Of a stretch of 64,000 bases of DNA, positions 9,749 to 64,000 are shown piece by piece. Source of the stretch: Asterias rubens (taxonomy: Eukaryota); the NCBI RefSeq assembly GCF_902459465.1, contig NC_047065.1, positions 2,542,001 to 2,606,000 of the forward strand. The letters run 5' to 3'. How positions within the stretch are numbered: position 1 is the stretch's first letter; the number at the start of each line of letters is the position of its first letter. The notes beneath the pieces are model-generated. The model worked only from the letters and a program-made list of their open reading frames with translations, was not told the origin of the DNA and did no database searches. Both the position numbers and the translations under genes were made by a program.

Positions 9749-12700
9749 CTAAACTTTCCTTCTAATCTTCATCTCAGTTGTTTTGAGTGAGCGCCAACCC
9801 GAAAAGCCAGCCCACACAATTCCTTCTTGGTTCGTAGTGGCCTCATTGAAGTATCTCCCGTTCAAATTGGAGTAGTAGCAGGCACTGTACCACCAGGCTC
9901 CGTGCCATCGCTCAGCACAGTTATAAATACTCTTGGCATCGTTGTCTCGGTCTTTGGTCGTAAAGGCCTGGTTATTGTGGGGTGATAACTTGTCTCCTGA
10001 AAGATAACACACGTAGCCATTATAGTCATACGTGTAAATAAAGGCGATGTTGACAGGAGGTAACTTTAAACATTAATTTGTTTCGAACATAACTTAGGCC
10101 GATAAGGTGCGATTAGAAACAAATTTATCAATTAATGGAACTGGGATATTGGGAGAAGTGAAGTAAATGTTTCACAATCAGGTCCAATTTTAACTGCATT
10201 TTGTTTTCTTTTTAAAGCCATTGGACACATTCTGAACAGAACCAAAAGTTAAAAGTTCACAGATTTACAAATAACTTACAAAGTTTACAGAAGGTACTGG
10301 TGAAAGACTTCCCTTGAAATATTATTCCATGAAACGCTTTACTTTTTGAGAAAACATTAAAACACCTATAAATTTTCGATATCAACAATAACAGATTTAT
10401 TATAAACACATGTCATGACATGGCGAAACGTGCGGAAACAAGAGTGGGTTTTCCCGTTATTTTCTCCTGCCTCCGATGACCGATTGAGCCTAACTTTTCA
10501 CAGGTTTGTTGTTTTATATTATTATACGTTGTGATACACGAAGTGGCCTTTGGACAATACTGTTTACCGATGACAGTTTAATAAGATAGTTAGAAAATTG
10601 CTATCGAAATGGGATTTAAAAGCAACGTTTATACGTTATATTTGTTCTCCTCCAAATTGTGGTTTTACGATTCTGTTAAATGTTTCTAGCGAGTTTAAAA
10701 TGGCTGAATTCAAGTTATTTGTCGTACATTTTGTCATTTTTTAGTTTCAAGGGATTAACATCATCTTCCTCTTTTTTACTTGGTGTTGGGCAGCAAAGGA
10801 TACACCCCTCCAATTTCGGCTTGGTTTGAGCAGCAAGTGATGCAAAATTCTACTCCTCCTTTTTCCGTCTGGAGTTGAGGAACAAAACAAAAACAATTCC
10901 CCCTCCACTTTTTAAGGCACTCCAGACACTATCGGTTATTACTCAAAATGATTATTAGAAACCTACTTGAACTAGCATTGGAGAGATGTGAACATTGTGA
11001 GAAACGGCTCCCTCTGAAGGAACGTAGTTTTTGAGAAAGAGGTGATTTCTCATTCAACTATTTGAATCACGATGTTTCTTTTCTCTCTTTCATTGACACC
11101 AACCAAAAGCAATCGGTCACAGCGATAAACACAGACTACCCTGCCATATTTTTGTATAACTACGAAGTTTCCACTTATAGCATCTTACCTGCGGTTCCAG
11201 AGTAACTTCCTACCATCAGCCGGTAGTTATCGCTCACATCGGCGATGCTGAACGAGCCATAAATAGCAAAGCCGGTATCGTCGTCGAGGCCTGTGAGATC
11301 TACGCGGAGTTCGTACTCGCCCTGAGCAGTCAGACGGTGCAAGTTGTCGTTACCCAGCCAAAACTCTCCCTCTAGATTCCCAAAGCCCCGGCTGTAGTTG
11401 GCAAAGTCCAAATAGAAATCTACACTGCCGTCCTGACGCCGCTGGAAAACCTATCAAGGGAACGTGGAGGTTTTTAAAATAACCCTGGTCTTCTTTGACT
11501 TGATCAAACTTATTCTTATTTACAAATATTCGTAGAGATGAGTACTATCTAATTCACTATAATCCGTGAACTTACCGTCCATCCACCACCGTCTGTTTCC
11601 ATATCACAGTATACCTGGAAAGCTTCACCGGAGTCTAGAGGTTGTACCGAGTACACGCCACTGATCAATTCACCCCTCGCAAGAGTCTCGGAACAATCAT
11701 TTGGAGGGGCAACTGTACAATAATATTTTATGTAAACATTAAAAAAAAAAGTTTTTATTTCACCAACTGTAAGGACATAGATGTTATAATTTAAAGGCAG
11801 TGGACACTATTGGTAATTACTCAAAATAATTATTAGCATAAAACTTTACTTGGTAATGAGTAATGGGGAGAGGTTGATGGTATAAAACATTGTGAGAAAC
11901 GTCTGCATCTGAAGTGACGTAGTTTTCGAGAAAGAAGTATTTTTCCACGAATTTGAGTTCGAGACCTCAAGTTTAGAATTTGAGGTCTCGAAATCAACCA
12001 TCTAAAAGCACACAACTTCGTGTGACAAGGGTGTTTTTCTTTCATTATTAACTCGCAACTTCGACGACCGATTGAGCTTAAATTTGCACAGGTTTGTTAT
12101 TTTATGTATATGTTGAGATACACCAAGTGAGAAGACTGGTCTTTGACAATTACCAATAGTGTGTCCACTGTCTTTAAGAGAGTGATAATAAAGTCTCAAC
12201 GTGTTTTTGAAAAAAAATTAAAGTCACCTTGCAGTGGTATTTTGTCAAAATAAAGCTTTTGTCACTAAAATATGTGTTTTGATGAGTGGAATATGAATAC
12301 ACAATTAACTAAGGTTTAAAAAAATTAGTTTCCATGTAATTTACAAATTTGAAAATAAGCCCGACCCAAGAGGGCGCTGTTCCTCACGTCAATCGAGGCG
12401 CGATGAATCGCATGCAGTGCCAACACAAGATAATGACGCTTGGCGTAAGCTAAAAACATGCCCTCAAAGTTGAAACAATACCTGATTTTTTTCACGTTAC
12501 GCAAATGCTCCTTTAGGTTAGTTACGTCTTTCAGGTACCTTCTTCGACTTCCCAACTAGCTGGAAAAATTGTTGGTATGGCGTCATGTTTTAGAAAGGAA
12601 CTTTTCTCTTCATGTCAAAATGTGTAGTGTATTCCGGATTCTCGAAGCACGACGGCTCGGAGTGTTTGCTGCACAGCGCTGGAAAAGATTTGCAAACTGA

Positions 12701-13889
12701 CCCCATCTTTAGTTGATTAGCTGCATCCAGCCATCAGCAATACACCTGGGCCCAATTTCATAGCGCTGCTTAGCGGCCGATTTTGTGCTTATTGTGCGAT
12801 TTCCATTTCATAGCCCTGCTAACCGTAAGCACACGAAAATGCATGCTAACCTTCCGATGCTTACCACACGAAAATAAATGACGTCACAATGCAAATCCAT
12901 GGTAAACACGCAATATGGCCGCCCAATTTTTCTGCTAACCTGTGAAATACGCTAAGGCTTAAGCAAATTGTTCTGCTACAGTAAGCACGCAAATTTGCTT
13001 ACCGTAAGCAGCGCTATGAAATTGGGCCCTGGTCGACATTGCCGAAAAAAATGCAAGAAAAAAACTTTTTCGAAACGTACAAACTCACGACTAGGACTTG
13101 AATGTACTTGCTCGTACGTGTGTTCGATGTTTGATCGAGGCAAAGTCTGCCTCGATTGACGTCACAAAAGGGGTAGGCGGAGTCACCCCCACACAACTTT
13201 AATTAATTGTTTAAACATATAAATCGTTAAAAACAATTACTCAAAACATTATTTTATTGTTAAGAAACATATACTCTAATGTTTGAAAACAAAATCATCT
13301 ATTTCCAGGTGACTTTAAGCTGCTTTTCCAAGGTCCAGTAAAGTATTTCTATTTCTACAGCACGGCTTGACGTTACCAACAAAGTTATCTTCGGCTTCGT
13401 GAACAATCTTTCTATAGCCTTTATTATAATGTATGTAAAAGCAATAAACTTACGTCTAACATGAAGGAATTCAACCAAGTTAGAAACAGACACTTGAAGA
13501 TCATCAAGCTGTCGTCTTAAACCCTGTACCTCCGAGGAGACCGCTGAGACTGTGTTCTGCAATTCCTCGACTGTACGTTTAGTATCAGTAAGCTCGGAGG
13601 AAACAGTCTCCTGATTTGCTGCGACTGTGAACTGCAACTCATCTTGACGTATTGATACTGTATGAAGTATTTCCTGGACGGTCGTACAGTTGTAGCCGCC
13701 GGTACCGGAGTTCACGGGAACGGATCGCCCGCAAACTGGCGGGTTGACTGTGATGTGTGGCTGGCACACACATCGTTCAGTCTCGCTCGTTGTGTAGGGC
13801 CCAATGCTATGCTGAGTTTGGGATCTTGCTCTCATAGCAAACACGGCTAGGAAGACCAACAGGGTCATTTTCATACAAGCTGGTTCCAT
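9749..13889 (-). CDS. Secreted fibrinogen-related protein (FReD; ficolin/angiopoietin/fibroleukin-like, no collagen), copy 1, intact, 360 aa
   Basis: Exons 13454-13889, 11576-11712, 11189-11450, 9749-9996, all with GT-AG junctions and phases 1/0/1 giving a 1083-nt open frame. Motifs: [60 protein letters not shown]. Hydrophobic N-terminus [16 protein letters not shown]. Confidence 0.93.
11795..12173. mobile_element. MITE family A in intron 1 of FReD copy 1
   Basis: TTAA|AGGCAGTGGACACTATTGG ... CCAATAGTGTGTCCACTGTCT|TTAA. Confidence 0.88.
12222..13314. mobile_element. 1.1-kb TTAA-flanked non-autonomous DNA transposon (Kolobok-like family C) in intron 1 of copy 1
   Basis: TTAA|AGTCACCT ... AGGTGACT|TTAA; contains the nested element 12749-13028. 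Confidence 0.8.
12749..13028. mobile_element. Nested Harbinger-like MITE
   Basis: CTG|GGCCCAATTTCATAGCGCTGCTTA ... TAAGCAGCGCTATGAAATTGGGCC|CTG; 3-bp CWG duplication. Confidence 0.88.
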
Positions 13890-56978: not shown

Positions 56979-58005
56979 CTGCGGAATAATTCAAGAGTAT
57001 TAGTGAGTTATGTTAACTGATGATGGCGACAAAAACAAAACTGGAGCCGTTTTTGTCCTTGTGCCCTTTTGTGCCTTTGTTATTTTTATTGTCTGGATCG
57101 CCTTTAGATAGTGATTATTTTCCGCTTTTTGGTTATCCGCAGGCTTGTTCTCTGTGTAGTCTTATTTGTATTGCCTATTCTTTGTATGTTCTGTTTGCCT
57201 GAAAATAAATAAATAATTAATAAATAAATAAAATAAAATTTCAAAAAGAGCCAAGATAGATCTTCACCGTGTATCAATCTTAATTGCTGAAGTATGATGC
57301 CGCAATACAAATCTTTATAGTGACTAAGTGATTTGTATTTCGACTTCAGACTATGCTTAGGATGAGTTGTTGATTCAACCTCTGGAGAACCTCTGTGATT
57401 TTCACATTTTTTTGTCAAAAACGTGACGACTATTTGCACCGCTGTGGGCGTTGAGGGCGACTGACTCCTTGTCAGTCGCGATTCTGGTGTCCACCGGATG
57501 GACGTTTTGGGCGGCAGGTCCCAAAGTTTTAAAAAGATATGTTCCTCGTGACCGAATTACCATCGGGAAATCGGGAGTGGACGGCAATGGTGAAACCACT
57601 GGCGTCGATGGCCTAAGACCAAGGTAGTATCTTTGCCTTCGGGGGAAAATTAAGTTTTCTTATTTTCGACCGTTTAGACCCATGTGTGGGAAAATGTGTT
57701 TCACTTGCCGGGCACAATGGCGGCCGGTCTTTGCGCTTGGGCGCATTTGTATAAGGGACATAAATGGTGCCTTTGTTAATCGTTTAGTGGTTAACAATGG
57801 CACGTTCCTTGATGGTATCAGGGGTCCATGGTGGTCAGTGGATTGCATGAGTGGGTACATGGGTGTCGCATGAGTGGGTACATGAGTTAAAGTGCAGGTG
57901 CCAGCGGGCACGCAGGCATAATATAAGAGTGTTTCATTATATGCATGTACGTTGCAACCTACCCTGTGTTTCTACCTCCATGCTTTACCGGTACAATTCT
58001 TAAAG

Positions 58006-59303
58006 ATGGACGAGTACACTGCTGTTGAGGAGAAAGCGGACGCCTACGGCGACGTGGCGGCCGACAAAGCCGCCCCCCTTTTCCGAGGTCTATGCTCTAC
58101 CTTTCGGGTTTCAGTGGAATGCTTTAACTCCCTTCTTGATGATGGCTGGGACGATCCGGATCAACTAATGAACTTGTCGGCTGACTGGCGCAGCCAGGTT
58201 TTGGCATTGGCACCAAATGGGGGTCAGAAGCGGAACTTGGAGCTTCTGCTCGACCGTGTGGATGCAGGGCCTCTCGACGGGCCAGCACCAAAGAGGCGAC
58301 GTGTTCTGCAGCTGGCGGCCAAAGAGTTCGACGTTCCAGCCGGCCGGAAGGACGCAGCGGTCGTCGTCCCTTTTGAGGAACGTCCCGGCAGTTCCACCGG
58401 TGCGCATGCACCAGAGGCAGCGGTTGCAAAGGAGTCCGCTTCCCCACAGGTATTTCCTTAATTTGTGTAGCCCCATATGTCATGCAATATTAATAGGCTC
58501 CTTGACTATTTTGCATTCTATCTGTTGCTCATTGTTTGCTGCTCTCAGAAGCTTTGTTCACAATATATAGAAGTGGGGTATGAATCTATTTAAATTTGGA
58601 TTTGGTCACTGTTTGGTTGCAGTCGGTCGCAAGGGGTGTATCGCTGTAGGCAGAGGGGGGCTGCGGTACTTCATTAGTATTGCGTTAAGATTGCTTTGCA
58701 GCAGTTGACTAAACCTATTTTATCATGGTAGAGAGGACCATCGAGGTATGGTGGTGTGTTGAGCTGACCTGATGCACCATTGGGGGTCGTACTAGTTAGT
58801 TAATATATTCGGTGCTTCTGTACCCTAGATAATGGTTCGGGAGTTCAGTGTCCAAATGGGGAAGATTCCCTTTTAATTTGAAGCTTTGCATCCATGTATT
58901 AGATAAACCCGTAAAAGAGTTGGTGTTTTAAATGGGAGTGCCTATTTTTTGTGAGCCTTGCATAAGGGTAGTGCCCTAGTAATGAACATGGAAAGTGGGG
59001 GTTTTAAATTGGTAGCGCCCCCTTTTGTTTAGCTTTACATCGGGCAGTGCCCCAAGTATAATTAACCCGGAAAAATCGGGTGTAAATGGGGAGTGCCCAT
59101 CCTTGGTTAGGTTTGTACTCGGAATACCCCAAGTATTGAGCCCGGAAAATCGGGTGTTTTAAATGAGGAGTGCCCATCTCTGGTTAGCCTTAGTTTCCTT
59201 CGGGGAGTGCCCCAAGTATGTTCCCGGAAAATCGGGTGTTTTAAATGGGGAGCGCCCATCTTTGGTAAGTGTTAATTCGGGGAGTGCCCTAAGTAATGAA
59301 CCC

Positions 59304-59352
<49 letters not shown>

Positions 59353-59428
59353 GGGTGTCTTAAATGGGGAGTGCCCATTTTTTTTTGGGTTTTCCTTAGG
59401 GGAAGTGCCCCAGTTAATGCCCCCCCCC

Positions 59429-59468
<40 letters not shown>

Positions 59469-61042
59469 AGTGCCCATCTTTCTTTAGTTTTCCTTCAGGG
59501 AGTGCCCCAAGTTATGAACCGGAACAAATCGTGTGTTTTAAACGGGGAGTGGCCATTTTTGGTTAGTTTTCCTTCGAAGAGTGCCCCAATTAAGGAACCC
59601 GTAAAATCGGGTGTTTTAAACGGGGAGTGCCCATCGTTGTTTAGTTTTCCTTCGTGGAGTGACCCAAGTACGGAACCCGGAAAAATCCGGTGTTTTAAAT
59701 GGGGAGTGCCCATCTTTGTTTAGTTTTCCTTCGGGGAGTGCCCCAAGTATGGAACCCGGAAAATCGTGTGTTTTAAATGGGAAGTGCCCATCGTTGTTTA
59801 GTTTTCCTTCGGGGAGTGACCCAAGTACGGAACCCGGAAAAATCCGGTGTTTTAAATGGGGAGTGCCCATCTTTGTTTAGTTTTCCTTCGGGGAGTGCCC
59901 CAAGTATGGAACCCGGAAAATCGTGTGTTTTAAATGGGGAGTGCCCATCTTTGGTTAGTTTTCCTTCGGGGGGGGGGGGTGTCCCAATTAATAAACCCGA
60001 AAATTTGTGTTTTAAATGGGGAGTTCCCATCTTTGGTTAGCTTCCCTTTGGGGAGTGCCCCGAGTATTGAACCCGGAAAATCGGGTGTTTTCAATGGGGA
60101 GTGCCTATTTCTAGCTAGCTTACCTTAGGGGAGGGCCCCAGGGAATGAGCCCAGAAAAATGGGTGTTTTAATCGGCGGTTAGTAAGGTTTAGCTTTTCAT
60201 CGGGGAGAGTCCCAAGAATTGAGCCGGGAAAAAATGGGGAGTGCCCATCTTTGGTTTTACATAGGGGAGTGACCCCATAAATAAAAGGGGAGTGCCCTGA
60301 GAAATGAACCCAGAAAATGGGTGTTTCTAGAAGGGGAGTGCCCCTCTCTTGTGGTCTTGGTCGGCACTGGGGCGTCCCCCGTTTTGCTTGGGCCTTGGAA
60401 GTTAAGGAAATGTGGGGAGTGCATCCCCTACGTATAGACGTATTTTGCCCGTTACAAGGGGTTGCTATATAAGACTAGAGCTCAATAAAATTAGCTCCTT
60501 AAAGAAGGGTTAGCAGTTTGTTTGCACTCGTATCACGTTATATTTGTTCACCGCAGGCAAAATCGGCTCTGGAAGTCCATAAACCTGGCAGGCTTCAGTT
60601 ACTCAAGGCTTGCACCGAGACCGGTTACGATCGTAACGTAGCCTATGTCATGGCTCTCCTTCGTAAGTACGTCTCCGAGTTCGTTCCTCTATCACCCGAG
60701 GACATCAAAGAGAAACAGTTGTATGTCAACCTTCTGTCTGATTGCAACAAGCACGTTGAGGCCAAGACGCCTGGCATAGCAATGTACATCTATAAGTCAA
60801 TTACTGGGGAAGATTCGGACAAGCGTCTGCGCTTTGCAAGAAAGCATCTTGGTCACATCGTCCCTCCTGGTGATGTCAAACCTCGCTCAGCGGCCCAGAG
60901 TGGCACAGCCTTCAGAGCCGGGCAGCCTCAGCGACAGGGTTTCAGACAATTCCGTCAGCCGGGTGTGCCGAGAGACAGGGATGTCTGTTTCCGATGCCGT
61001 AAAAGGGGTCATTTTTCTCGAGACTGCAAGGAAATACTTTAA
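58006..61042 (+). CDS. gag-like ORF1, predicted as two exons (58006-58449 + 60557-61042), 309 aa
   Basis: CAG|GTATTT phase-0 donor at 58450 and tatatttgttcaccgcAG| phase-0 acceptor at 60556 join in frame (..ESASPQ|AKSALE..). Ends in CFRCRKRGHFSRDC (CX2CX4HX4C). Confidence 0.7.
58910..60345. repeat. 78-bp tandem satellite, ~18 copies, inside the predicted gag intron
   Basis: Unit aaatcgggtgttttaaatggggagtgcccatctttgtttagttttccttcggggagtgccccaagtatggaacccgga; two GGGGAGTGCCC sub-repeats per unit; degenerate at both edges; poly-A runs at ~59307-59350 and ~59431-59465. Confidence 0.93.
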
Positions 61043-61194
61043 GTTCTCCCGAATCGGTTTGCCATGGTGGACTTTTAGTCAACGTACGGCGGGGGAAAGG
61101 GGCCTCGGGGTGATATCTCGGGTTTATATGTGCATGCTCTAGGGGGGGATCATAAGATATTCAGGTTTGTTCGAGGAATGCCTCGCCCTACTTC

Positions 61195-61195
<1 letters not shown>

Positions 61196-61269
<74 letters not shown>

Positions 61270-61283
61270 AAAAAATAAAAAAT
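61196..61283 (+). repeat. Poly-A tract (~70 A) between gag and pol
   Basis: Directly visible homopolymer. Confidence 0.95.
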
Positions 61284-61513
61284 ATCACGTAGAGTACTGT
61301 ATCGTTTATGGTGTTGTGGTTTAGTGGCTCAAATAAAACGATATGAGCGGTTGGCAGTTTGACGCTAAGAAATTACATTTGTGAGTGAGTTGTATTCATG
61401 ACTTATTGTCCGAGTTTTCTTTTCCCTTTTATATATTTTATAGACCGTTCATTGGCCGTTGGAAATGTTTTACAAGCTGTGCTTTAAACGGTTTCTCTCT
61501 TGATTAAACCTAG

Positions 61514-62458
61514 GAGTATAGGCGGTACTTGAAGATATTGGGAACCCATGTGTGGGAGAGCTCATCTTGCTACCCCTTTGATCCTGTTGCAGCTCAGGCG
61601 GCCAGGCGGCGCCAAGGTTCGTGTATCTGGGTAGATATATCCGGAGCTGCTGCAGGGCCCCCCGATGGATCAGAGCCAACTCCGGCTGAAGTTCTTTCAG
61701 GTGTTTGCCGGCCTAATTTTCAAGCCCTGCGTTTTCGAGACCCAGATGTATTTGTAGCTGGAGGTCTCCACGATCATCCCCAGGCGTGGGATGACATATT
61801 GGCTGAGTGCCCTCACGCCGGTCAGCAGATAGGGCAATGGTTGCGTCAAGGCGTAGACTTGTTTGAGTTTTTCCAACACTTTAGAGGAGAATACCGGGGT
61901 AGAACCTTTGACTCGGCTATCCCGCCACCCATGTACTTTTCTAACGCCCCTATTTGCAAGGAATTCATCCCTTTCATTAATGAGACAATTTTGAAGCGCC
62001 TTGTAGAGGGGTCAGTGGAGCTTATTGGGGCGGTAAAAAGTACAAGACCGCCGAGGTGTGTCAATGCGCTCACCATCGAACCCAACAAACCCAGATTAGT
62101 TTTGTCGATGAAGGGGCCAAACCTCTGGTGTAAGGATACACCTTTCAAATTAGTTCCATTGGGGGAAATTGTGAAATCGATTGGTCGGGGTGGAAAGTTC
62201 TCGGGAACCGACGACGCTCAGGGATACAAACAAATCCTTCTAAATGAGAGGTCTAGGACCTTCTGTGGTTTTGAATGGGCGGGATTCTATTTTGTTGACA
62301 CTACTCTCCCTTTCGGTTTCAAAAACAGTGCCTACATATATTCCTCACTTGGGTTTTGTCTCTCAACCTGGTTAAAAAACAGGGGCATTCACACAGAAGT
62401 TTGGATCGATGACCGTTTCATTGGAGAGTGTGGTGGAGAGGGGAAGTCTTGTTCCTAA
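61514..62458 (+). CDS. pol part 1: reverse transcriptase N-terminal half
   Basis: IEPNKPRLV, TDDAQGYKQILL, FEWAGFYFVDTTLPFGFKNSAYIY, WIDD. Open from 61514, directly after cctAG. Confidence 0.88.
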   Translation, partial: EYRRYLKILGTHVWESSSCYPFDPVAAQAARRRQGSCIWVDISGAAAGPPDGSEPTPAEVLSGVCRPNFQALRFRDPDVFVAGGLHDHPQAWDDILAECPHAGQQIGQWLRQGVDLFEFFQHFRGEYRGRTFDSAIPPPMYFSNAPICKEFIPFINETILKRLVEGSVELIGAVKSTRPPRCVNALTIEPNKPRLVLSMKGPNLWCKDTPFKLVPLGEIVKSIGRGGKFSGTDDAQGYKQILLNERSRTFCGFEWAGFYFVDTTLPFGFKNSAYIYSSLGFCLSTWLKNRGIHTEVWIDDRFIGECGGEGKSCS

Positions 62459-62489
62459 AAGCAGAATGTTTGTTTTTGTTTGTTTGCAG

Positions 62490-64000
62490 GGCTCGATCAA
62501 CGATTCGAGTCAAATGGCTTGTACAAGGGCTGCTAGAGCGTTGTATGTAGTCTGTTACATGCAGTCACGCCTTGGATACTTCATCAACCTGAGGAAGAGC
62601 CAATTGCAGCCGGTTTCACGGATGGTGCATTTGGGTCTAGGGGTTTGCTCAGACTCCCTATCTTTTTGGATACCGGATAAGAAGAAGTGCTCATTCGCCC
62701 GGGTTAGGGAGGACATGTTGAAAGCGGGCTCGGTGCTTCTGAAAGAGATGCAGCGCTTTGTAGGGAAATGCCAAAGCTTCATTTTAGTGTTCCCTGCGGC
62801 TTCCCTTTTTGTCCGGGAGTGTTGCTCCTTTATGGTCAAGTTGGATGAGGTCACACCTGTTGTTTTAACTCAACCGGTACGCGATGAAGTGCTCTTTTGG
62901 CGTTTTGTCGACTCATTTTCAGAGCCTATCCCATGGAGGAAAGAGCGGCACTTGACAGTAAGGTTGGCGTCGGATGCCTCTGGTCATAAATGGGGTGGGG
63001 TTTTGTCACTTCCCGGTCAAGACGCCATCACCTTCGGCGATTATTGGTCATCCAATGTGCAAGTTATAACAGACATCTGTTACAAAGAGGCCCTGGCTTT
63101 GTATTTTGTTTTGCTGTCAGTAATAGATACACTCTGGGACAGAAGAGTCGACGTGCAGGTGGATTCGCAAAGTCTCTTCCATGCGTGGTCAAAGTTGAGA
63201 GCAAGGTCCCGAGCTCTCGCAGAGGTATTAAAGATGATTTTTGCTCTCACCCTAGAAGCTAATTTCGACCTAAAGTTGGAGTGGGTCCCAAGTGGGGAGA
63301 ACCAGGCAGATTTTCCGTCCAGGGAGCTTTCTAGAGCGGACGCTCGTCTTACAGCATCGATGTGGCATTTCCTGCAAAGGGAGCTGGGTGGAAGTTCGGG
63401 GTTTTCATGGGATCTCATGGCACTACCCTCCAACGTTCCGAAAGGCCGTGATGGAAAAACCTTAAAGTTCTTCTCAAGATTCCCAGTTCCAGGCTCGTCA
63501 GGGGTGAACGTGTTTGCACAGTCATGCCCTCGGGGTGAGAAGCTGTATGTTTTCCCTCCCTTTGTGCTAATTCCAGCTCTGATCAAGCTATTCATCGAAT
63601 GGGGAAATGTGTCGGTGACAATAGTAGTGCCGAAGCACCACCATCCAAGGTCCTGGTGGCCACGGTTAGTGTCTTTTGCGACACGGTCTTTGCGCCTAGC
63701 GGAACTCGGTCAGACAGGCGTCCTGGAATTTCCGACGAGGCGAGGATATGGAAAAAGCTCAGAGGGCCTTCGATTCGAGCTTTGGGCATGCGAGTGTCGT
63801 TTTCCTGCAGATAGTCGGATTTCGAGGGAGGTTTGTTTGCCCGCTCAGCACCCAGTGCTTCTAGTATCTGATTCGATGTTCAAGGGTATGAGGGGTTTTG
63901 GTTGGCCAGCGTCGCTGGGCGTCAGGTTGAGCGTAAATGGCGGAGCAAGATTAGGAGCCTTGTGCAGCGTTTTGGCACAGTCCTGTCGAGCAGAGAAGCC
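62490..64000 (+). CDS. pol part 2: RT C-terminus, RNase H, adenine-methyltransferase-like domain, SGNH-like start (open to window end)
   Basis: Manual translation gives ~503 codons without a stop (absent from the ORF track, presumably because it runs off the window): RLGYFINLRKSQL, QRFVGKC; RNase H LASDASGHKWGG / KEALA / VDSQ / ENQADFPSR; MT WDLMA..SN, GVNVFAQ, YVFPPF; then VLLVSDSMFK...NGGARL. Confidence 0.85.

Follow-up and report, generated by a model that had tools for sequence, protein, structure and literature searches.

Known intron-bearing retroelements and the Asterias locus

Usually a single retroelement RNA serves for the translation of Gag and is also reverse-transcribed, and the balance between the two uses is an old question. 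The window analyzed here is a stretch of 64,000 nucleotides (nt) from the 417.6 Mb genome of the sea star Asterias rubens (C4:2542001-2606000, i.e. NC_047065.1, forward strand). A DIRS-like tyrosine-recombinase (YR) retroelement of about 8.7 kb extends from position 57430 to approximately 66140, as delimited by an alignment of 20 kb around each of its copies; positions beyond 64000 are window-equivalent coordinates. The gag region forms the 5' half of this element and is probably split by a 2.1-kb spliceosomal intron.

The closest described relatives are ALOG-domain retroposons of the DIRS1 class. They are approximately 9 kb long and have been reported from the sea star Patiria pectinifera, corals, molluscs and Ectocarpus (Iyer & Aravind 2012, PMC3537659). 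The Asterias element shares with them a zinc-knuckle Gag, a reverse transcriptase (RT) with RNase H and an ALOG domain N-terminal to a tyrosine recombinase. That paper, however, makes no mention of introns and describes its metazoan copies as disrupted, whereas the copies described here are intact, near-identical and have open reading frames (ORFs) with acceptor-like starts. PAT-like and Ngaro-like YR elements resemble the Asterias element in the repeat layout A1 ... B1-A2 ... B2, in the order gag-RT/RNase H-YR and in having no visible target-site duplication. Introns are not mentioned in four reviews of DIRS, Ngaro and PAT elements (PMC3266345, PMC3783388, PMC6681497, PMC9210276), although Goodwin & Poulter may have described them earlier. 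An obligatorily spliced gag lies outside the architecture given in those reviews.

Genomic copies that keep parts removed from a subgenomic mRNA are known from retroviruses and from the spliced long terminal repeat (LTR) elements copia, BARE1, Ogre, CRR and Bagy2. Only the unspliced RNA of the spliced LTR elements is replicated, and BARE has distinct RNA pools for translation and replication (PMC3735527). These elements are of the LTR/integrase type and their unspliced RNA still encodes Gag; splicing tunes the Gag:Pol ratio or opens env or pol. The Asterias element, in contrast, is of the YR type and its unspliced RNA would be unable to encode Gag. Penelope-like elements retain introns after retrotransposition, with an intron near the 5' end (Arkhipova et al. 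2003, as cited in PMC8557442). They differ in their RT clade, their GIY-YIG endonuclease, their target-primed insertion and the position of the intron in the 5' untranslated region. No GIY-YIG domain was matched in any ORF of the Asterias element scanned with Pfam; a recombinase is found there instead.

Given the retroviruses, copia, BARE, Ogre and Penelope, the first-pass annotation of this window overstated the rarity of intron-retaining retroelements. Intron retention itself is known. What appears to be new is a YR element whose unspliced RNA cannot, as read from its sequence, encode Gag. The structure is well supported; the mechanism is a proposal.

Exons, boundaries and copies of gag

The first ORF of the element ends with ...GCT TCC CCA CAG/GTA TTT CCT TAA (here and below, slashes in sequences mark predicted splice boundaries). 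The CAG ends at 58449, the adjoining GT is in phase 0 and a stop codon follows three codons on. The second ORF is open from stop to stop between 60503 and 61039 (stop codon 61040-61042), and its first in-frame ATG, at 60650, is codon 32 of the conserved block. This block is preceded by ...tatatttgttcaccgcag/GCA AAA TCG, in which the AG ends at 60556 and coincides with a codon boundary. Excision of 58450-60556 joins 148 and 161 codons in a single frame of 309 codons. The C-terminus of the joined protein matches the zf-CCHC zinc knuckle with an E-value of 1e-5, which passes the cut-off (PF00098). An ORF stopping just past a phase-0 donor, a second ORF without a real ATG behind a codon-boundary acceptor and a 309-residue CCHC protein after removal of 2107 nt had all been noted in the first-pass annotation, and the sequence bears out each of them. 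For the coordinates of all annotated features see Table 1.

Table 1. Annotated features of the DIRS-like element (positions in the window; those beyond 64000 are window-equivalent).
Feature	Position	Strand	Description
Exon 1	58006..58449	+	ATG, 148 codons; five-helix SAM-like domain (aa ~20-90), PKRRRV-type motif, disordered S/T/P tail ending in Q
Predicted intron	58450..60556	+	2107 nt, GT...AG, phase 0; conserved position
Gag exon 2	60557..61042	+	161 codons and stop; helical bundle, CCHC zinc knuckle (Pfam zf-CCHC)
RT ORF part 1 (fingers/palm to WIDDRF)	61514..62458	+	Block starts right after ...ttaaacctag/; no ATG until aa ~140; Pfam RVT_1 weak
RT part 2 / RNase H ORF	62490..64000, on to 64382	+	Start at conserved tttgtttgcag/G, phase 0
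Recombinase ORF	64451-65710 (outside the window)	+	Starts at polypyrimidine-AG site
Tandem-repeat array in the intron	58922..60171	+	Units of 77/78/157 bp, repeated GGGGAGTGCCCC motifs (TRF)
A-runs A44 and A36 in the intron	59307..59465 (59307-59350, 59430-59465)	+	Length differs between copies
A-run ~A87, spacer between gag stop and RT ORF	61196..61282	+	Length differs between copies
5' terminal repeat A1	57429-57487	+	100% identical to A2, 65851-65909 (self-BLAST; three-copy boundaries)
TATA-like box ATATAAG	57922..57928	+	~80 nt 5' of the exon-1 ATG; pattern search, putative

The same two boundaries recur in related elements. Exon-1 homologues are 42-62% identical and all end in ...SQ/V, and exon-2 homologues are 60-81% identical. 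An exhaustive HMMER search yielded seven exon-1 homologues, all short ORFs (from the element itself, Patiria, P0016, P0018, P0020, P0024 and P0026, the last with a matching copy on C20). All seven end in ...SQ followed by V (GTN) in phase 0, and similarity is lost beyond this point. The acceptor reads yCAG/GCNAA (CAG/GCNAARTC) in phase 0 in all five elements with DNA. Ungapped identity in the five is 15-38% in the 84 nt upstream of it, compared with 67-82% downstream. Since these two points are also where homologues in other elements stop and start, the match of the boundaries is more than a chance coincidence.

Four of these five elements have an in-frame stop and no ATG ahead of the conserved exon-2 block. 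Codons 1-28 of exon 2, which all lie 5' of the first in-frame ATG, show proportions of nonsynonymous differences (pN) of 0.02-0.14 and of synonymous differences (pS) of 0.69-1.06, i.e. synonymous sites are saturated. The substitution pattern thus indicates strong purifying selection on these codons at the protein level. They are therefore translated, and a start further upstream is needed. Among the conserved coding blocks upstream, only exon 1 terminates in a donor.

Alternatively, no splicing takes place. Exon 1 and the CCHC ORF would then encode two proteins, the second one initiated either from Met32 (60650) or from a codon other than AUG, with the repeat array between them as a spacer. 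An ATG does stand just before the Q of QAKSALEV in Patiria and in one relative, and the only contigs seen across the donor are unspliced RNA or DNA. That ATG is not conserved, however, and the constraint on codons 1-28 is hard to reconcile with the upstream stops. In every element examined, similarity stops and starts exactly at the GT and the AG, in matching phase. We consider this alternative improbable.

A search with the exon-2 ORF identified a 310-residue CCHC protein of Patiria miniata, XP_038056426, that bridges both halves. It is 62% identical to exon 1 over residues 4-100 (E-value 2e-45) and 69% identical to exon 2 (E-value 2e-83). Homologous gags aligning to one half only had been named in the first-pass annotation as a sign against the intron; the Patiria protein aligns to both. 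Its junction reads ...GSTSSQ/AKSALEVHKP, compared with ...ESASPQ/AKSALEVHKP in the Asterias element. The underlying locus, L046, holds a complete element whose parts follow in the same order. Exon 1 spans 10001-10429, the intron 10430-13279 (2.85 kb, 2850 nt) and exon 2 extends to 13780; the intron boundaries are CAG/GTATGT ... ttttaacaatcaatgcag/GCC. The RT, RT/RNase H and recombinase ORFs of this locus are 64-74% identical to those of the Asterias element. Three further Patiria loci carry paralogous gene models that use the same junction, which makes four NCBI models in all. A third element was found on a 7.85-kb ENA metagenome contig. There, P0023, homologous to exon 1, and P0011, homologous to exon 2, share a strand and are separated by about 1.4-1.5 kb (~1470 nt).

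In the A. rubens genome C4, C11 and C3 each carry a copy of both gag coding blocks, with 100% identity. All three copies keep the interval between the blocks, with lengths of 2107 (C4), 2136 (C11) and 2133 nt (C3). Over 8.7 kb only six substitution columns separate them in a three-copy alignment, and their lengths vary only in the A-runs, at one position in the array and in the final few bases. None of the long ORFs is disrupted. We take this to mean that the element is active at present or was so very recently. Each of the three copies is flanked by sequence unrelated to that around the others, which excludes segmental duplication as their origin. The earlier statement that the family keeps its intron is consistent with these three copies, with the Patiria element and with the third element on the metagenome contig. 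Taken together, the alignments show that the predicted intron is fixed in position, phase and boundaries across elements of at least two sea-star genera and that it was copied faithfully into new insertions.

The 2.1-kb interval could also be a nested insertion, i.e. a repeat or short interspersed element (SINE)-like insert with A-tails in a gag that was once continuous. The present copies would then be dead passengers, mobilized in trans or segmentally duplicated. The interval indeed contains tandem repeats and long A-runs, and a similar TCNCCNCAG string lies ahead of both of its boundaries. On the other hand, the same residue is interrupted in Patiria and in the third element by intervals of other length and sequence, and a sister family (family B, see below) also carries the array upstream of exon 2. 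The unrelated flanks and the intact ORFs argue against passengers and duplications as well. We regard a nested insertion as extremely unlikely. A late insertion into this one dead copy, raised by the first-pass annotation as a refuting outcome, is effectively refuted by the intact, near-identical copies and the interruption at the same site in relatives.

Family B comprises at least 20 copies (e.g. C1:27658767-27666785, C7:13946740-13955156 and C21:7425494-7434055) that are 83-90% identical to the Asterias element over most shared parts. Two stretches are missing from it, 60727-60963 and 57921-58716, the latter with exon 1, its donor and the TATA-like box. Its exon 2 is preceded by roughly 700 additional nt, its knuckle is frameshifted, and the family is probably non-autonomous. 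Since exon 1 and part of gag are lost, family B is uninformative on the gag junction. Its 240-nt deletion was considered as a splice event and ruled out, as it sits at a TGT microhomology.

The remainder of the element agrees with its classification. From stop to stop, the ORFs follow in the order exon 1, CCHC exon, a 314-residue RT part, a 669-residue RT/RNase H part and a 430-residue recombinase. RVT_1 (E-value 0.006) and RT_RNaseH (E-value 9e-4) both score under the Pfam cut-offs; the IDDR motif and other RT blocks are invariant in an alignment of 12 relatives. The 430-residue ORF (64421-65710) contains an ALOG domain (PF04852, E-value 8e-15, 55.5 bits against a cut-off of 26.6), and relatives of this ORF carry the Phage_integrase domain PF00589. 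No methylase domain was matched by Pfam in the part of the element scanned. The termini are split direct repeats in the layout A1 ... B1-A2 ... B2, in which B1 (65778-65854) and B2 (66060-66136) are 100% identical by self-BLAST and the B1-A2 junction (65778-65909) lies near the 3' end. The first ~16 nt of the element recur inverted at its 3' end as a 16-nt terminal inverted repeat. No target-site duplication is visible at the three insertions on C4, C11 and C3. The closest protein matches come from Asterias amurensis and Patiria miniata. Judged by its RT/RNase H, ALOG-type tyrosine recombinase and split direct repeats, the element belongs to the ALOG-bearing class of the DIRS order, and the earlier assignment to a DIRS-type family was correct.

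Protein models, RNA contigs and the case for splicing

Exon 1 and exon 2 were folded separately. The AlphaFold model of exon 1 has a pLDDT (predicted local distance difference test) of about 85 for residues 20-90, which form five short helices and are followed by a disordered tail. The top PDB matches in a Foldseek search with this model were SAM domains (SAMSN1, the LEAFY N-domain, ASK3 and Eph receptors), with template-modeling scores of 0.55-0.7 normalized by target and non-significant E-values of 1.5 or higher. No Pfam match was obtained for the exon-1 domain. A PKRRRV/PKKRRV motif, which we take to be a nuclear localization signal, is conserved among exon-1 homologues. The model of exon 2 consists of a five-helix bundle plus the knuckle.

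Several observations weigh against a split gag. The joint 58449 to 60557 was not found in four RNA-type contig sets (X1, X2, X3 and X11), and a metatranscriptome contig from X2 spans 58218-58550 without mismatch and is unspliced over the donor. In Patiria, the proteins spanning the two halves come from gene prediction. Relatives with an uninterrupted gag did not turn up, so that the evidence for the two halves being one protein consists of splice-site logic, the phase and the gene models. The fold search with exon 2 returned generic helical bundles only and no capsid-like match; the label Gag accordingly rests on position and on the CCHC knuckle.

The four RNA-type sets are Logan contigs of low depth in which minor isoforms are dropped, and the RNA nature of two of the runs is a guess. 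At the acceptor, one run reaches a depth of about 2 and the others a depth of 0. Further RNA-type contigs lie within the intron interval, and most of the other contigs belong to family B, which X1 matches. The joints reported in these data stem from the diverged, deleted sister family (skipping 60723-60964) or from the repeat array. Coverage is thin. A replicating element is expected to produce unspliced RNA, and carry-over of DNA is possible. The RNA data neither prove nor refute splicing. Of the intron interpretation in the first-pass annotation, the canonical CAG/GT...CAG/G boundaries, conserved in phase 0, and the selection past the acceptor stand; the junction reads that it called for do not appear in the four sets. 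From the boundaries, the phase and the constraint we infer splicing of 58450-60556. We assign a probability of roughly 0.74 to the reading that gag is genuinely split by a conserved 2.1-kb spliceosomal intron in an active, ALOG-class DIRS-like element. Spliced exon 1-exon 2 retrocopies were not found in the A. rubens genome.

Starts of the other ORFs and a proposed mechanism

The RT, RT/RNase H and recombinase ORFs likewise begin without a start codon at a polypyrimidine-AG site in phase 0, as they do in the Patiria locus L046 and in L047 and L055. The conserved RT block starts after ...caatttag/ in Patiria and after ...cttacttag/ in L047; the boundary is TAG/GAR in three elements with DNA and ...cgtttcag/GCT in the fourth, L055. 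Five more distant relatives have a read-through Q (CAG) ahead of the same block. The tttgcag/G start of RT part 2 is conserved in four elements. The recombinase ORF starts after ...ttccttgtctctcaag/ (64451), ...ttcataatccag/ or ...ttcattttcag/ in three elements, with CTC, TTG or TTA as the next codon.

Between the two RT parts the frame is broken 5-15 codons past WIDDRF(I/V)G.A in at least 10 relatives (62420-62490 in the window); it is continuous in the distant relative P0063. In four elements part 2 is offset from the frame of part 1 by +1, -1, 0 (with a stop) and +1. An exhaustive enumeration of local GT-AG introns that might join the two ORFs, carried out in three elements, yielded no in-frame solution that was consistent, and inspection of the fourth (L055) by eye revealed no in-frame GT donor between the parts. 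A local canonical intron was therefore rejected.

These starts suggest an extension of the split-gag reading in which exon 1 is a shared leader. The donor at 58449 would be spliced alternatively to 60557 (gag-CCHC), 61514 (RT part 1), 62490 (RT part 2/RNase H) and ~64451 (recombinase). Exon 1 would then not be specific to gag, and every protein of the element would start with the SAM-like and nuclear localization module. Phase 0 is found at every acceptor with DNA and at the sole donor. The RT block follows directly on an AG with a polypyrimidine tract and without an ATG in the four elements with DNA. In addition, the conserved stop at the end of gag precludes read-through into the RT ORF.

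Two further sequences are compatible with a shared leader. One is a decayed copy at C2:5409686-5410944 (L054:4686-5944), in which an exon-1-like tail ...KATTPQ runs straight into the RT start DNPYQR. This single copy might derive from a spliced RNA that was reverse-transcribed, or it might represent a relative that lacks introns. The other is a 6421-nt contig from ENA sample ERZ26222911 on which an RT ORF (P0038) follows 2.2 kb after an exon-1 homologue (P0020); the interval lacks a called gag exon 2. On the negative side, the shared leader has no RNA support, and no annotated exon 1-RT or exon 1-YR protein was found in large protein searches. Many relatives of the recombinase have an ATG of their own near the start. 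The leader would also entail an RT made as two polypeptides, for which we know of no precedent. We therefore regard a shared leader as a tentative possibility. If it exists, the earlier description of a gag split by one intron holds for gag and may understate the extent of splicing.

A more specific version appears somewhat less probable still. According to this version, a coding leader is spliced in phase 0 to four acceptors, and Gag-CCHC, the two RT/RNase H halves and the ALOG recombinase co-assemble via the common SAM-like/nuclear localization module and not as a Gag-Pol fusion. The array in the first intron would mark the template.

The tandem-repeat array fills most of the intron, with the repeat unit GGGGAGUGCCCC; neither this array nor the two A-runs of the intron had been mentioned in the first-pass annotation. 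A GGGG-N3-6-CCCC motif occurs nine times in the intron and once in the other 6.6 kb of the element. In the Patiria element the corresponding counts are 28 in the intron and 0 in the remainder. The arrays of Asterias and Patiria (L046:10797-11762) are unalignable yet have the core GGGGA(A)GTGCCCC in common. The Patiria intron likewise contains A-runs (A29 and A32). Where the A-runs of the Asterias element differ in length between copies, RT slippage or assembly may be the cause.

Based on the split gag we propose the following mechanism. Exon 1 would contribute the start codon, a small helical SAM-like domain and a nuclear localization motif, and exon 2 a helical bundle and the CCHC zinc knuckle. 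Translation of the spliced RNA would yield the 309-residue Gag. Only the unspliced RNA would be reverse-transcribed, so that translation and replication would take place on separate RNA molecules. Since message and template would then differ, Gag would have to act in trans. The repeat array is confined to the unspliced RNA and could mark it as the replication template. Retroviral packaging signals are located downstream of the major splice donor. By analogy with these signals, the GGGG-N3-6-CCCC motif may tag the unspliced RNA for packaging or reverse transcription.

If splicing can be confirmed, this element keeps translation strictly apart from replication, its Gag has to find its template in trans and the intron has to carry the mark that tells template from message. 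With a young family, at least two sea-star genera and a motif conserved in the intron, the question is within reach of ordinary RNA work. There are consequences for annotation as well. ORF-based transposable-element callers and prokaryote-style gene callers cut such elements into start-less fragments, and in eukaryotic pipelines the spliced gag ends up as a 'CCHC-type domain-containing protein' of the host.

An Rfam scan of 57000-64000 returned spurious A-run matches only, and a sigma-70 promoter scan was disregarded because the host is eukaryotic. Exon-1 sequences are also found in other contexts. In the Asterias amurensis gene models XP_071810199-202 (P0019/P0030/P0031) an exon-1 fragment, 81% identical to residues 71-148, forms an internal exon; it ends at the same ...SPQ/ donor and is joined to unrelated sequence. 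Further diverged exon-1 homologues at C20:5093-5577 and C14:5227023-5227858 have the APNGGQKRN...AGPL segment partially duplicated internally.

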